Positions 6,521 through 11,320 of a stretch of DNA of 64,000 nt are shown here, one piece after another. Position 1 is the first letter of the stretch; every line of letters begins with the position of its first letter. Source of the stretch: Dimorphilus gyrociliatus (lineage: Eukaryota > Animalia > Annelida); the NCBI GenBank assembly GCA_904063045.1, contig CAJFCJ010000008.1:682001-746000 (forward strand), in the 5' to 3' direction. The position numbers and the translations under genes were made by a program. The notes beneath the pieces are model-generated. The model was not told the DNA's origin and made no database searches. It was given only the letters and a program-made list of their open reading frames with translations.

Positions 6521-6580
<60 letters not shown>

Positions 6581-6604
6581 TAATATATGTATTAGTATAT
6601 ATAT
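6521..6604. repeat. (AT)n microsatellite ending in a 15-bp-arm inverted repeat
   Basis: About 58 bp of near-pure AT, then ATATATATACTAATA-tatg-TATTAGTATATATAT (6571-6604). Confidence 0.9.
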
Positions 6605-6891
6605 TTATATAGTTTTAATTCGCATTTGGTACTTTTAACGTAGGTGAAACATGCATAAACGTGATGAATATTAACAGTATATTATTCTATGCGTTTTTTC
6701 TTGCTTTTCTCTAAATACAACATAACATAGATAAATAGACAAGTAACCCCATCTGAGTAGGCCAACAACATATGCTAATGGTTTTACATGTTTGTAGCAG
6801 AATTTAATTTATGACATGGCCAATCAGATGATGATGATGCAAAGTTGAAAATTAAACTGATGTTTTAGGCTTTAGATAGTGATTTCTGTTT

Positions 6892-9729
6892 TCATTTTTT
6901 TCTTATGCATTGAATGATTTCTTCTGTTAAAGGCTTCATTCCTGGTGTATCGATAGCGCTGCACACGTGAAATTTAACCTTTTTCTCACTTGTGATACGT
7001 TTTTCGAACTCCTTCTTTATGTATTCAATTACGTCGGCTTCTTCATTCCTACCTATTTTGATGGAGTAGAAAGGCTATCGTCATTTAATACGCTAACGAA
7101 TTAATGCTAATACGTGAATGGCATCGGTAAATTTAGTAAATGTTGGTTAGCATATACGTCCAAAAGAGGCTACTCTTTGGTTTCATGCATATTTTCTTAC
7201 TCGCCTACCTTTGTAATTCTCAATTATTGATGAAAATGGAACATCTGCTAGACGTTTTCCTAGTAGATCCTTCTTATTGAGTAGAAGAATGAAATTGGTA
7301 TTCTTTAGGAATTGATTTGTTATTACAGAGCCAAAAGCCGAAAGGGAATCGTGAAGGGAATTTAACGAACTATCTTCATAGGTTCCTTCGCTGTATGACG
7401 TCAATGAAGTTATAAAAACGATTGCGGTGACGCCTTCAAACAGGCTGATCCATTTATGACGTTGCGACCTCTGACCTGGGTAATTTATTAGTCAATTAAT
7501 TCGTTCTCCAGTAAATTCTTTTACATTAACACTTACCAGCAACGTCGATTACTTTGTAAACATTTCCTTCTGATGTGAACATGTGCTCCTGAACGCTTGC
7601 CGTAGGTTTCCGTATAAATAGTATGTCCTCAATATCCGGAATGTAATTGGTCGATAATATTCTTTCCAGTTTGGATAAGAAACTGCAAAATTTTTCTCAA
7701 GGTTACAATTTTTAATACATACGCATCTTATTAACTACTCAATCCTACGCTAATTCGAAACAGAAAGTACACGCTATTTAAGGTCTCAAGTCTATTTTAG
7801 TACTCAAACATCTACACTTTCTGTGTGCAGTAGACGTCTTAAAAATAGAAAAAGATAATGTGAAGGAAAAGGAGTATGAAAATCAGACCTATATTATTAT
7901 TATGCTTTCCTATCACGTGATTTATCTTCTTAGGATGATTGCTGGGCATGACATGATACGTACCTGCCAGTAACGTCAGTCACGAAATTTAACTTAATGT
8001 GCCTGCGGCGTTTATTTATTTTCAGCCGTCTTCTTATAAAAATAATTCAAAGAGAAAGTTGACCGCCAAGCTAACTGCACTTTGAATATTTTACTCTGAT
8101 CTTTATTAGGCCTTTCTCTCGCTCTCTCTCGCTCTCTCTCTCTTTCTCATTTACTCAGTCATTCGTACATATGCACACATATACACAGACACAGACACAG
8201 ACACACACACACACACACACTCTGTCTGCTCTCTCTCTCTTTCTTCTCTCTTTCTCTCTCTCTCTCTCTCACCTTTACACTTTTCCCACCTCTCTTTTTC
8301 TCACTTACTCTTTTGGCTCCCTGACTCTTTCCCTTTCATTCTCCCTCTTTCGCTCTTTTTTAATTTACTCACTGATCCGCGAAAGTTTTTCGTAGACCAA
8401 ACTTTTTTATATTCTCTTGCCAGATGGTTTGAACGCTCTTATCCCGCCACATGCTTAAAACATCTGCAGCTAAAGATGAAAGTTTCGAATAGTTGACATT
8501 TTTTTTTGAGTGATCTTCTTCTTGACTAGAAGAGCCCTTCCGTCCGATGTTGGATCGGGGAAATTTCTCAACGAATAGGCTGTACGTTTTCTGCTCGTTA
8601 AAAACAGTGTTAGACGTTCCCAGCGGGGCACTAATATAAGTATTCGTACAGCGTTACTTCCGTCCTCCCATTCAGTTACCTGCTCCAGTATAGGGTAGAG
8701 AGCTTCAACCAGGTTCTCATAAACGTAAATAGTCCACGTTTTTCTTTCAGATTCAGGGAATTTATCCCCATGCCGTAATCGTAATTGTTTAATAAAGGTG
8801 CTTTTGCCACTTCCAGCGCCACCTAAGTGGAATAAGAAATAGTTAATGGGAGTATTTATCGAATAGCCAAATCCCTCATCTATGGTCAAAGTCCTGTTTT
8901 ATCAATGAGTCAGATGGAAGGGATGGAATATACGTCATTGCTAGGATATTTGATCCAACTATTATTAAGGTTTCCAAAGAGTCCAAGGTATGTAAGATGA
9001 TTATTCAGAATAAGAAAAAGAGTTTTTATTAGTTTTATATATAGCCAAATAAAAGCTTATCTAATTACGTCCGCCATGACCCTGATATATATACATATTG
9101 TGCTTTTCATTGTAGTATAAATTATAACGTTTTCTTGTTTTCCTTTTTACAGGAAAAGAGTAAACAAACCTTTTTACAAAAGGGAAAAGAATAAAAAAAA
9201 AACAGGGGAAAAAATGACTTAGAACCCGTTTTCTAAATCAAAGTATGCAATTTTGACATTTACTAGGCAAATCACTTGACCAAAGAGTTTCTCTTTTTCT
9301 CCACGTTTCAACTTTCCACCCCTTTTTGCAGAATATTTCTCAACGAAAGCGGAGAGAAAAAAAGAACAATAAATGTTTTGTAAGTTTTGACTGTTTCCTT
9401 TGAGAAAAAATTGTAGGTGGGCGGGCAAGTGAGAGGTTGAGGAGAGGAGGGGGCAGGGGGGATAGAGGGGGAGAGGGCGATGTGAAACTAAGGGGGAGAA
9501 AAGTTACTTTCATAATAAATTTACAACAATAAATTACTGACCATTTATATTAAAAAGATATTGACTCTTTAAGGAAACCTTTTAAAAGTTGAAGCGTTAG
9601 ACAGCCGTCAAAAATAAATAAGTTATAGTGGAAATATGTGCTCAATATATAAATATAAATATGTAAATAATCCACTCTAAACTGCAATACTGCAATATTT
9701 ATAAAAATATTTTTAGGTCTAGTATAAAT

Positions 9730-9776
<47 letters not shown>

Positions 9777-9989
9777 TATAATTTATATTTATATTTATAT
9801 ATGCACCTTGACTCCTAGGCAAGCTTTGCGCCCTATATATTTTCTATTTACTCTCTACCGTATATACTATTAACCTAAAATTAGAAGTTGCAAATCATCG
9901 TGCTGTTTTTCTCTTCCTTCTTCCAATTGTTGATCAATACTTCTGCTTTTAGTCTGAGCCGATTTGTTTAGTTTCGGTCCACCCGGCAT
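6892..9989 (-). CDS. Divergent heterotrimeric G-protein alpha subunit, about 359 aa. Exons 9989-9875, 8822-8650, 8590-8373, 7682-7537, 7475-7209, 7052-6892
   Basis: KSRSIDQQLEE...LQLLILG|GAGSGKSTFIKQ, NYIPDIEDILFIRKPT, DVAG|QRSQRHKW, LLNKKDL, HVCSAIDT. Phases are all consistent (1080 nt) and several introns sit at typical G-alpha positions. Confidence 0.9.
8101..8360. repeat. Compound (CT)n/(CAGA)n/(CA)n microsatellite block in a G-alpha intron
   Basis: Direct reading of the sequence. Confidence 0.85.
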
Positions 9990-11320
9990 TTTCTTTTTTC
10001 GGCGTTCTTCTTCTATTAAATTGAAAAAAGGGATTATGTATAATTAGGATGACAGAAGCTGAAAATTATTCAGTATGCATGAGAGGGAATTAAGTTGCTC
10101 TACTGGTTATTTAATCGAACAATCGAAGCGTTTCTTGTTTGTCAAGAAGCGTAACATGTCTGAATATTTAGAATTAATAATAAGCTGCTTCTCTTTCCTT
10201 AACTCTTTTCCTTTCTTGCTTTTCCTCTCCTCTCCACAGAGCAATAGTACTTGGACTGAAAAGTTTCTTAATGATACGTTTTTTTTCTCTTTCGAAATTG
10301 TATAAACTTCTATAGGCCTTTTGCATAAAATACAAAAAATATTCGTAGGCCTATATCTTTAATCAACCGACGTTGACGGAAAAATATAATTTCTTACGCG
10401 GGAAAAGGTCATTATATACAGAGACGATAGATATACCCCACAGGCCTACTTGTTAATAGCTTCGTTTTTTTACGTAACCGTTTTGAGTTACTAATATTTC
10501 TCAAAGAGAAAAATGGGTATTTAGAACCAAGATATTATTAATTTATTGGTTCAAGCGTAAAATTACGGCTATAGGCTTATAAACAAGAAACAAAGATCTC
10601 TAGTCAATTGCCCTTGCATAAGTCAATAACTATTATGAAATATATTGATAGCATAAAGTGGCTTACCTGGCAGAAAATATAATAAATAAAACAGAAAATC
10701 AAAAAGAGGGAGAAGACACAGAGATGGGAGGGGGGAGAATTTCTTGACCTTTCAGACTGATAACCTGGAATAAGCTCGTTACCAGAGGATGACGGGTTTT
10801 TAACTGCAAAAACTCCCTACTGCTTAATAGGCCTACTAGACGCCTATGTAAAAACATAATCAAGTGATTTTTTTCAATCTTCCCACGCAAACCATATGTT
10901 CTTTACACGTAAGATACAGATTTTTTTTTACCCTGAGTACTAACATTCTATAAGGAAACCTTATGCAAATAAGGAAACGTATATCTAATTGCAAGAAAAA
11001 AACGGAAAGAAAATACTTTATATTTATTTAAAAACCAATAATATTCAAGTTCAAGGCGAGAAGGGAAAGGAGAATAAAAAAGGGAAAAGGGGAATAAAAA
11101 AAAGGCTAAATAAGACGGCTGATGAAAGGAAACAATCTTCGATTAATATTCTTTCCGTTTTTTGTCAGTATAATCCAAATCTGAAGGGCTTAGATTTAAC
11201 CGATGGATTGTTCCAGTCCATTGCGAAAGAATATCATAACGCCTTAGTTACTATTATTACAAAATTTTTTATTAAAAGCCAAAAAAAAAAACAAAAACAT
11301 AAAAACAAAACAAAAATGAC

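Follow-up and report, generated by a model that had tools for sequence, protein, structure and literature searches.

The minus strand of a 64,000-nucleotide stretch of the genome of the annelid Dimorphilus gyrociliatus (contig CAJFCJ010000008.1, positions 682,001 to 746,000 of the forward strand; hereafter the window) carries a gene for a G protein alpha subunit (G-alpha) in which the switch I glycine corresponding to Gly183 of Gi1 is replaced by serine. The gene has six exons and an uninterrupted frame of 359 codons, for a product of 359 amino acids. It belongs to GalphaVI, a sixth G-alpha class that is known but little investigated, as a derived member that evolves fast yet under constraint, and it is not a new kind of system. 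The Gly-to-Ser exchange is the standard laboratory tool for making a G-alpha blind to RGS proteins (the regulators of G protein signalling), and a natural, selectively maintained case in an animal would amount to an evolutionary test of the glycine's purpose. On balance, the evidence moderately favours the reading that this derived, expressed and constrained GalphaVI member has a switch I that would exclude canonical RGS boxes.

Switch I of the Dimorphilus protein

The original prediction placed a G-alpha with a Gly-to-Ser substitution in switch I at 7537-7682, and this was confirmed by translation, by the register of the HMMER alignments and by a family alignment of 52 rows. Exon 4 (7537-7682, minus strand) is an internal exon that encodes DILFIRKPTASVQE, from switch I through the DVA of DVAGQ, and it matches the Pfam G-alpha family with an E value of 5e-8. 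Translation of window positions 7538-7681 on the same strand gives FLSKLERILSTNYIPDIEDILFIRKPTASVQEHMFTSEGNVYKVIDVA, which contains IPDIEDILFIRKPTASVQEHMFTSEGNVYKVIDVA. HMMER aligns 'edilfirkptasvqe' of this exon with 'edilrsrdmttgive' of Gz without gaps, and the exon is also aligned gap-free to solved G12, G13, Gq and Gi chains; the 52-row family alignment has the same switch I register. The serine (codon AGC, 7597-7595, minus strand) thereby falls in the Gi1 Gly183 column and the preceding alanine (codon GCA, 7600-7598, minus strand) in the Thr182 column, and the catalytic Arg178 and the Mg-binding Thr181 are retained. The codon, the Thr-to-Ala change before it and the preserved Arg and Thr were thus all as had been proposed, and the exon borders at 7682 and 7537 match RNA joints. 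However, the canonical DVLRTRVKTTGIVE used for comparison proved to be the wrong reference, since the gene falls in the GalphaVI class, whose normal switch I is IRKPT[LVI]GVQE.

RNA evidence was taken from the contigs of four public runs placed on positions 6800-10400. Contigs of run X13 are 100% identical to the window, run X1 is a marine metatranscriptome close to it, and runs X3 and X5 represent two coded organisms that are relatives, at a dS (synonymous divergence) of 0.26 from the window; the sequences of X1, X3 and X5 are known as difference tables only. The X13 contigs, at a word depth of about 255, show zero differences at 7595-7597, and the Ser codon is therefore not an assembly error. 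The public D. gyrociliatus protein P0200 has Ser as well. In contrast to X13, which lacks the variant, X1, X3 and X5 have T for C at 7596 (plus strand), which changes the codon to AAC (Asn).

The state common to all four RNA sources is 'not Gly'. Ser itself may be lineage-private or strain-specific, and X13 may derive from the same laboratory culture as the genome and hence not be independent support for it. Asn is the more parsimonious ancestral state, with Ser as a recent change in the sequenced lineage, because X1 is apparently nearer to the window than X3 and X5, although this comparison includes no outgroup within Dinophilidae. The original prediction had allowed that the codon could be a sequencing error or a private allele: error is contradicted by the agreement of the X13 RNA with the genome and by the Ser of P0200, whereas the second possibility half survives, in that Ser may be private while the relatives have Asn. 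No study of the effect of Asn at the Gly183 position was found in the literature.

Membership of the GalphaVI class

Exon-by-exon hmmscan searches identify the product as a G-alpha. Exon 5 alone (E 5.6e-30, 105 bits) exceeds the 48.8-bit cut-off of the Pfam profile PF00503, exons 2, 4 and 6 match its consecutive positions 30-69, 144-190 and 284-331, and P0200 has a precomputed PF00503 assignment. The nucleotide-binding and catalytic motifs GGAGSGKST, IRKPT, DVAGQ and NKKD are intact, and the G5 box reads CSAID instead of SCA or TCA. By sequence, the closest solved structures are those of Go, Gz and Gi. A scan of 1.84 billion cluster representatives returned no close relative of exon 5, and its best matches there have the signature IRKPT.GVQEH...VIDVAGQ. 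A search of the protein collection with P0200 for dinophilid orthologs found none, the closest protein being from Owenia, at 43%.

The named relatives come from brachiopods (Terebratalia, Lingula), the nemertean Lineus, annelids (Owenia, Paralvinella), many molluscs including Lymnaea stagnalis, whose entry is named 'G protein alpha-a subunit' (P0175), hemichordates, amphioxus and anthozoans. In a tree built by quick search, with Gi, Go, Gq/11, partial G13 and protist sequences for comparison and with P0200 on a long branch, 40 rows including P0200 form one clade with a Shimodaira-Hasegawa-like approximate likelihood ratio test (SH-aLRT) support of 100 and a stem of 0.61-0.63. Inside this clade, P0200 groups with the annelid, nemertean and brachiopod members (support 86-91). 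Judging from sequence and tree position, then, the gene is the D. gyrociliatus ortholog of the class variously called GalphaVI, Gc or G-alpha-a. GalphaVI was described from Anthozoa, Spiralia and Branchiostoma and does not occur in ecdysozoans and vertebrates (McCulloch et al. 2023 preprint, 10.1101/2023.09.14.557824), and Gc of the coral Acropora palmata lacks the N-terminal Gly and Cys and is activated by opsin in vitro (Mason et al. 2012, PMC3515558). The matching taxon range and features make GalphaVI the same class as coral Gc and Lymnaea G-alpha-a. They also favour GalphaVI over Gv, the fifth class, of which the tree contains no sequence.

Several apparent oddities of the Dimorphilus protein are normal for GalphaVI. 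Class members have no Met-Gly start, and their P-loop, LGG[AGP][GS]SGK, lacks the usual Glu43. Lys, Arg or Trp stands in place of Val179 and Pro in place of K180, and Gln replaces Glu207; in nearly all members L, V or I (Q in cnidarians) replaces Thr182. G13, like the Dimorphilus protein, also has Pro at the K180 position. DVAGQ is common to the bilaterian members. In the Dimorphilus P-loop (at about 8800-8822), the residues corresponding to Gi1 G42 (equivalent to Gly12 of Ras) and E43 are Ala and Gly, respectively, and the P-loops of spiralian GalphaVI proteins have A, G or P at position 42 and G, S, C, Y or N at position 43. From the behaviour of Gz and of G42V mutants, such a P-loop may mean slow intrinsic GTP hydrolysis.

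Within the class, the Dimorphilus protein shares the clade itself, the absence of Gly2 and Cys, the P-loop without Glu43, IRKPT, DVAGQ and QRSQR. It differs by Ser183 with Ala182, K209H, H213S, Y320K, a short alpha5 helix and the longest branch. The class pattern for switch I, R-x-P-T-[LVITFMQ]-G-[VIM]-x-E, is accordingly broken, as IRKPT is kept but followed by A-S and not by [LVI]-G; given the tree, this mismatch is a deviation within GalphaVI and not a ground for exclusion. Two other assignments were considered and rejected. A Gi/o-type subunit with one odd residue, the implicit frame of the original prediction, is at variance with the position in the tree and with an identity of only about 45-50% to Go, Gz and Gi in exon 5. 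Membership of G12/13, to which RKPT might point, is contradicted by Ala rather than Lys at the Thr182 position, by the separation from the G13 row of Paramuricea and by Go, Gz and Gi as the nearest structures.

The glycine is the prevailing but not the universal residue of its column. Of the 39 other GalphaVI members, 36 keep it; the exceptions are amphioxus, with Ala, and a paralog of the whelk Babylonia and one unnamed relative, both with Cys. Gly has been replaced independently in P0166/P0167 (Branchiostoma floridae), P0180 (Babylonia areolata) and P0181, and in the case of the caenogastropod Cys paralog (Babylonia areolata) the sister copy retains Gly. Dimorphilus (window, X13 and P0200) has the only Ser of the class in the Gly183 column and the only Ala in the Thr182 column. 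Among 85 switch I segments taken from diverse cluster representatives at 50% identity, 8 lack Gly and have A, S, T, K or N; the protist and chytrid rows without Gly are P0005, P0012 (chytrid fungi), P0028 (Nolandella, amoebozoan), P0084, P0129, P0204 (Dysnectes), and the switch I of the Dysnectes G-alpha reads TTSIVE. A natural non-Gly residue in this column is thus uncommon but not unique, and no paper was found that discusses such cases.

Constraint on the gene and predicted escape from RGS control

The gene is real, spliced, expressed and under strong purifying selection. Between the window and X3, codons 195-359 (165 codons) differ by 23 synonymous and 9 nonsynonymous changes, which gives a ratio of nonsynonymous to synonymous rates (dN/dS) of 0.09 at a dS of 0.26; these values cover the differences listed up to position 7604 and exclude 40 more located upstream. 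X3 and X5 retain the stop codon and every splice site, and four runs contain RNA contigs of the gene. A pseudogene is ruled out by the intact frame, the splicing and the low dN/dS.

The protein has nevertheless evolved fast, yet within this constraint. P0200 has the longest end branch of all class members (1.3; median 0.21; Owenia 0.47, Paralvinella 0.70), and it deviates at 11 columns with a conservation of at least 90% among class members; the deviations include G183S, K209H, H213S, F224I, F267L and Y320K. The two switch II changes, K209H and H213S, affect otherwise near-invariant residues and, like Y320K, occur in no other class row. Three of the deviations at conserved columns (G183S, K209H and H213S) sit on the switch I/II face, the face of G-alpha that is used by RGS boxes, G-beta-gamma and effectors. 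Additionally, the alpha5 helix ends in EEIIQCIRKK (6895-6945, minus strand), about 9 residues before the class-typical IIVEINLRKxxxx; this short tail is unique among 41 class rows, as all 40 others reach the usual end. The receptor-docking tip of alpha5 is thus missing. Four of the 9 nonsynonymous differences from X3 lie in the last 17 codons.

This switch I can be compared with several known systems. When the glycine is mutated to Ser, Gi1-3, Go, Gz, Gq, G11, G14 and G15 are deactivated more slowly (Masuho 2020, PMC7572916). The RGS-insensitive mutants Gi1 G183S, Go and Gi2 G184S, Gq G188S and yeast Gpa1 G302S have the same Ser in the same column as Dimorphilus, with Arg, Thr and Gln retained. 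In contrast to these, the Dimorphilus change is natural, lies in another G-alpha class, comes with the loss of Thr182 and alternates with Asn, and its effect on RGS proteins would follow by analogy only. Thr182 is a contact residue in its own right, which hydrogen-bonds Asn88 of RGS4 (PMC8252600). In grasses, a natural Thr-to-Asn substitution in G-alpha lowers RGS affinity 7-fold and reduces the action of RGS as a GTPase-activating protein (GAP), with intrinsic rates unchanged (Urano et al. 2012, PMC3386157); the substitution, found as Asn195 in rice RGA1, accompanies the loss of seven-transmembrane RGS (7TM-RGS) genes (PMC3386157). Natural uncoupling of a G-alpha from RGS through a switch I substitution is therefore already known. 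As in Dimorphilus, the grass change is a natural one in the RGS-contact part of switch I of a gene that is still functional, and it provides a published precedent. However, in grasses the Thr182 equivalent is changed while Gly is kept, uncoupling was measured and the loss of RGS genes is documented, whereas the Dimorphilus gene is known from its sequence.

A further comparison is with G12/13. In G12, Lys in place of Val179 and Thr182 makes the protein sterically incompatible with the RGS box (PMC7572916). The Dimorphilus protein shares with G12/13 the Lys at the Val179 position, the Gln at E207 and the absence of Thr182, features held responsible for that incompatibility (PMC7572916). In contrast to G12/13, its position 182 is Ala (L, V or I in the class) and not Lys, and it lies outside the family in the tree. 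In both Gs and G12/13, Gly183 is conserved, yet no canonical RGS regulates either (PMC7572916).

By analogy with these systems, it is plausible that the combination of Lys179, Ala182 and Ser or Asn183 precludes acceleration by a canonical RGS box. The side chain in place of Gly183, in combination with the loss of Thr182, would block such a box on switch I, which would leave GTP hydrolysis at its intrinsic rate and the off-step outside RGS control. Since Thr182 is absent from almost all class members, RGS independence is probably older than the loss of Gly and may be a trait of GalphaVI as a whole. On this view, the loss of Gly, along with K209H and H213S, would have relaxed or remodelled the partner surface of switches I and II at a later time, and would not have been the sole freeing event. 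Weakened receptor coupling in this lineage is also suggested by the lack of both the alpha5 tip and lipid anchors (see below). Therefore, the claim of the original prediction that the subunit escapes RGS-mediated shut-off is reasonable as a phenotype, by analogy with G183S, G184S and G188S, but the case for this one codon as its cause is weak, as the class had already lost Thr182.

If the class, or this member of it, is RGS-independent, the uncoupling of switch I from RGS seen in grasses would be extended to animals. Combined with the missing lipid anchors and the short receptor-docking helix, RGS independence would, if true, point to an unusual regulatory cycle. The effectors, GAPs and receptors of GalphaVI are almost unstudied because vertebrates, insects and nematodes lack the class.

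Three considerations weigh against an escape from RGS control. There may be no RGS control of GalphaVI to escape in any animal. The toggling between Ser and Asn in close relatives looks like weak constraint and not like selection for one residue. Finally, the loss of Gly could reflect a change in another partner, such as G-beta-gamma, an effector or an RGS homology (RH)-type GAP; since Gs and G12/13 keep Gly without being under canonical RGS control, the residue must serve other partners too, and its loss need not concern RGS.

The strong purifying selection on the gene implies a working signalling cycle and lends some weight to the alternative that a GAP still switches the protein off. This could be a co-evolved RGS of the lineage that accepts Ser or Asn, or a GAP of non-canonical type (either an effector or a RhoGEF-like protein with an RH domain) that avoids the Gly183 position. 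The site accommodates Ser, Asn, Ala or Cys, depending on the member, and the class switch I resembles that of G12/13, which canonical RGS boxes do not serve, in its Lys at Val179, Pro at K180 and Gln at E207. However, no candidate GAP was identified, and the same Gly-to-Ser effect over many G-alpha/RGS pairs (PMC7572916) points to a steric effect for which it would be hard to compensate. This alternative is regarded as unlikely.

The same selection counts directly against a second alternative, namely that the gene is drifting towards loss of its classical function in a miniaturised genome and is retained for a residual role, such as the binding of one partner. A dN/dS of 0.09 over 165 codons at a dS of 0.26, the conserved stop and splice sites in X3 and X5, the RNA contigs in four runs and the intact motifs are not what such drift would leave, whereas the longest end branch in the class, the changes at 11 conserved columns, the tail that is about 9 residues short and the last 17 codons, which hold four of the nine nonsynonymous differences, agree with it. 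Taken together, drift is rather improbable. The weakest alternative, that Ser results from a sequencing error or is an allele private to the sequenced strain and without wider meaning, draws on the AAC codon of X1, X3 and X5 and on the possible common culture of X13 and the genome, but it is very improbable, and as an error largely refuted, as the X13 contigs and P0200 agree on Ser, the other allele encodes Asn and not Gly, and Gly is missing from all four sources.

Exclusion of canonical RGS boxes can also be taken further. The absence of lipid anchors and of the alpha5 tip, the RGS-excluding switch I and the remodelled switch II would together fit a dinophilid GalphaVI that acts as a self-timed switch, neither activated by receptors nor terminated by RGS, and maintained by purifying selection. 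This extension is speculative and doubtful; if true, it would be a natural animal G-alpha of the heterotrimeric type that works outside the cycle of GPCRs (G protein-coupled receptors) and RGS.

Gene structure and the public protein record

All exons lie on the minus strand, and spliced RNA contigs define GT-AG introns at 8823-9874, 8591-8649, 7683-8372, 7476-7536 and 7053-7208. Exon 1 (9875-10012) contains 23 nt of 5' untranslated region (UTR) and the coding start (MPGGPKLNKSAQTKSRSIDQQLEEGREKQHDDLQLLIL, ATG at 9989-9987); it is identical to P0200 and is covered by an X13 contig spanning 9873-10013. Exon 2 (8650-8822; E 2.1e-9 against the Pfam G-alpha family) encodes the P-loop GGAGSGKST and the start of the helical domain, and its joints 8822/9875 and 8590/8650 are found in X13, X3 and X5. 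The remaining helical domain is encoded by exon 3 (8373-8590; joints 8590/8650 and 7682/8373), which is also identical to P0200. The switch I exon 4 (7537-7682) is bounded by joints 7682/8373 and 7475/7537. Exon 5 (7209-7475), the exon with the strongest Pfam match (E 5.6e-30), encodes switch II (GQRSQRHKWISLF), switch III and NKKD. Exon 6 (6892-7052) encodes the G5 box CSAID and the shortened alpha5 helix and ends with the stop codon TGA at 6894-6892; its joint 7052/7209 is present in X13, X1, X3 and X5.

The N-terminus, MPGGPKLNK..., has no Gly2 and no Cys within the first 40 residues, and thus no N-myristoylation or palmitoylation site. At the acceptor near 10013, the X13 contigs run upstream into two different sequences, each with an in-frame stop before the ATG (loose ends read by eye). 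Translation therefore starts at MPGGPK, and an N-terminal extension with Met-Gly was ruled out by the stops in both 5' continuations. Such a pair of continuations at 10012-10014 suggests that the 5' UTR has two alternative exons, or that some other joining event took place at the 5' end.

The public record P0200 (DgyrCDS6938 [Dimorphilus gyrociliatus], 314 amino acids) is identical to exons 1-5 over residues 1-306. It then reads past the donor site of exon 5 into intron 5 (...ENYKGRRVRKYA*, 7183-7209, minus strand) and lacks the last exon. As all four RNA sources splice in exon 6, the 3' end of the DgyrCDS6938 model is in error, and the final coding exon should be added to it. The exact P0200 sequence is recorded on one contig only.

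Two minor observations concern the non-coding parts of the gene. A low-depth X13 contig at 8797-9363 (word depth about 18, compared with about 250 in exons) runs unspliced from exon 2 into intron 1 and is probably unspliced precursor RNA. Additionally, long (GA)n, (GT)n and (AT)n microsatellites, which probably explain why several unrelated runs share a small portion of words with the window, are present at 8120-8290, 9740-9800 and 6540-6620, in the introns and 3' flank of the gene.

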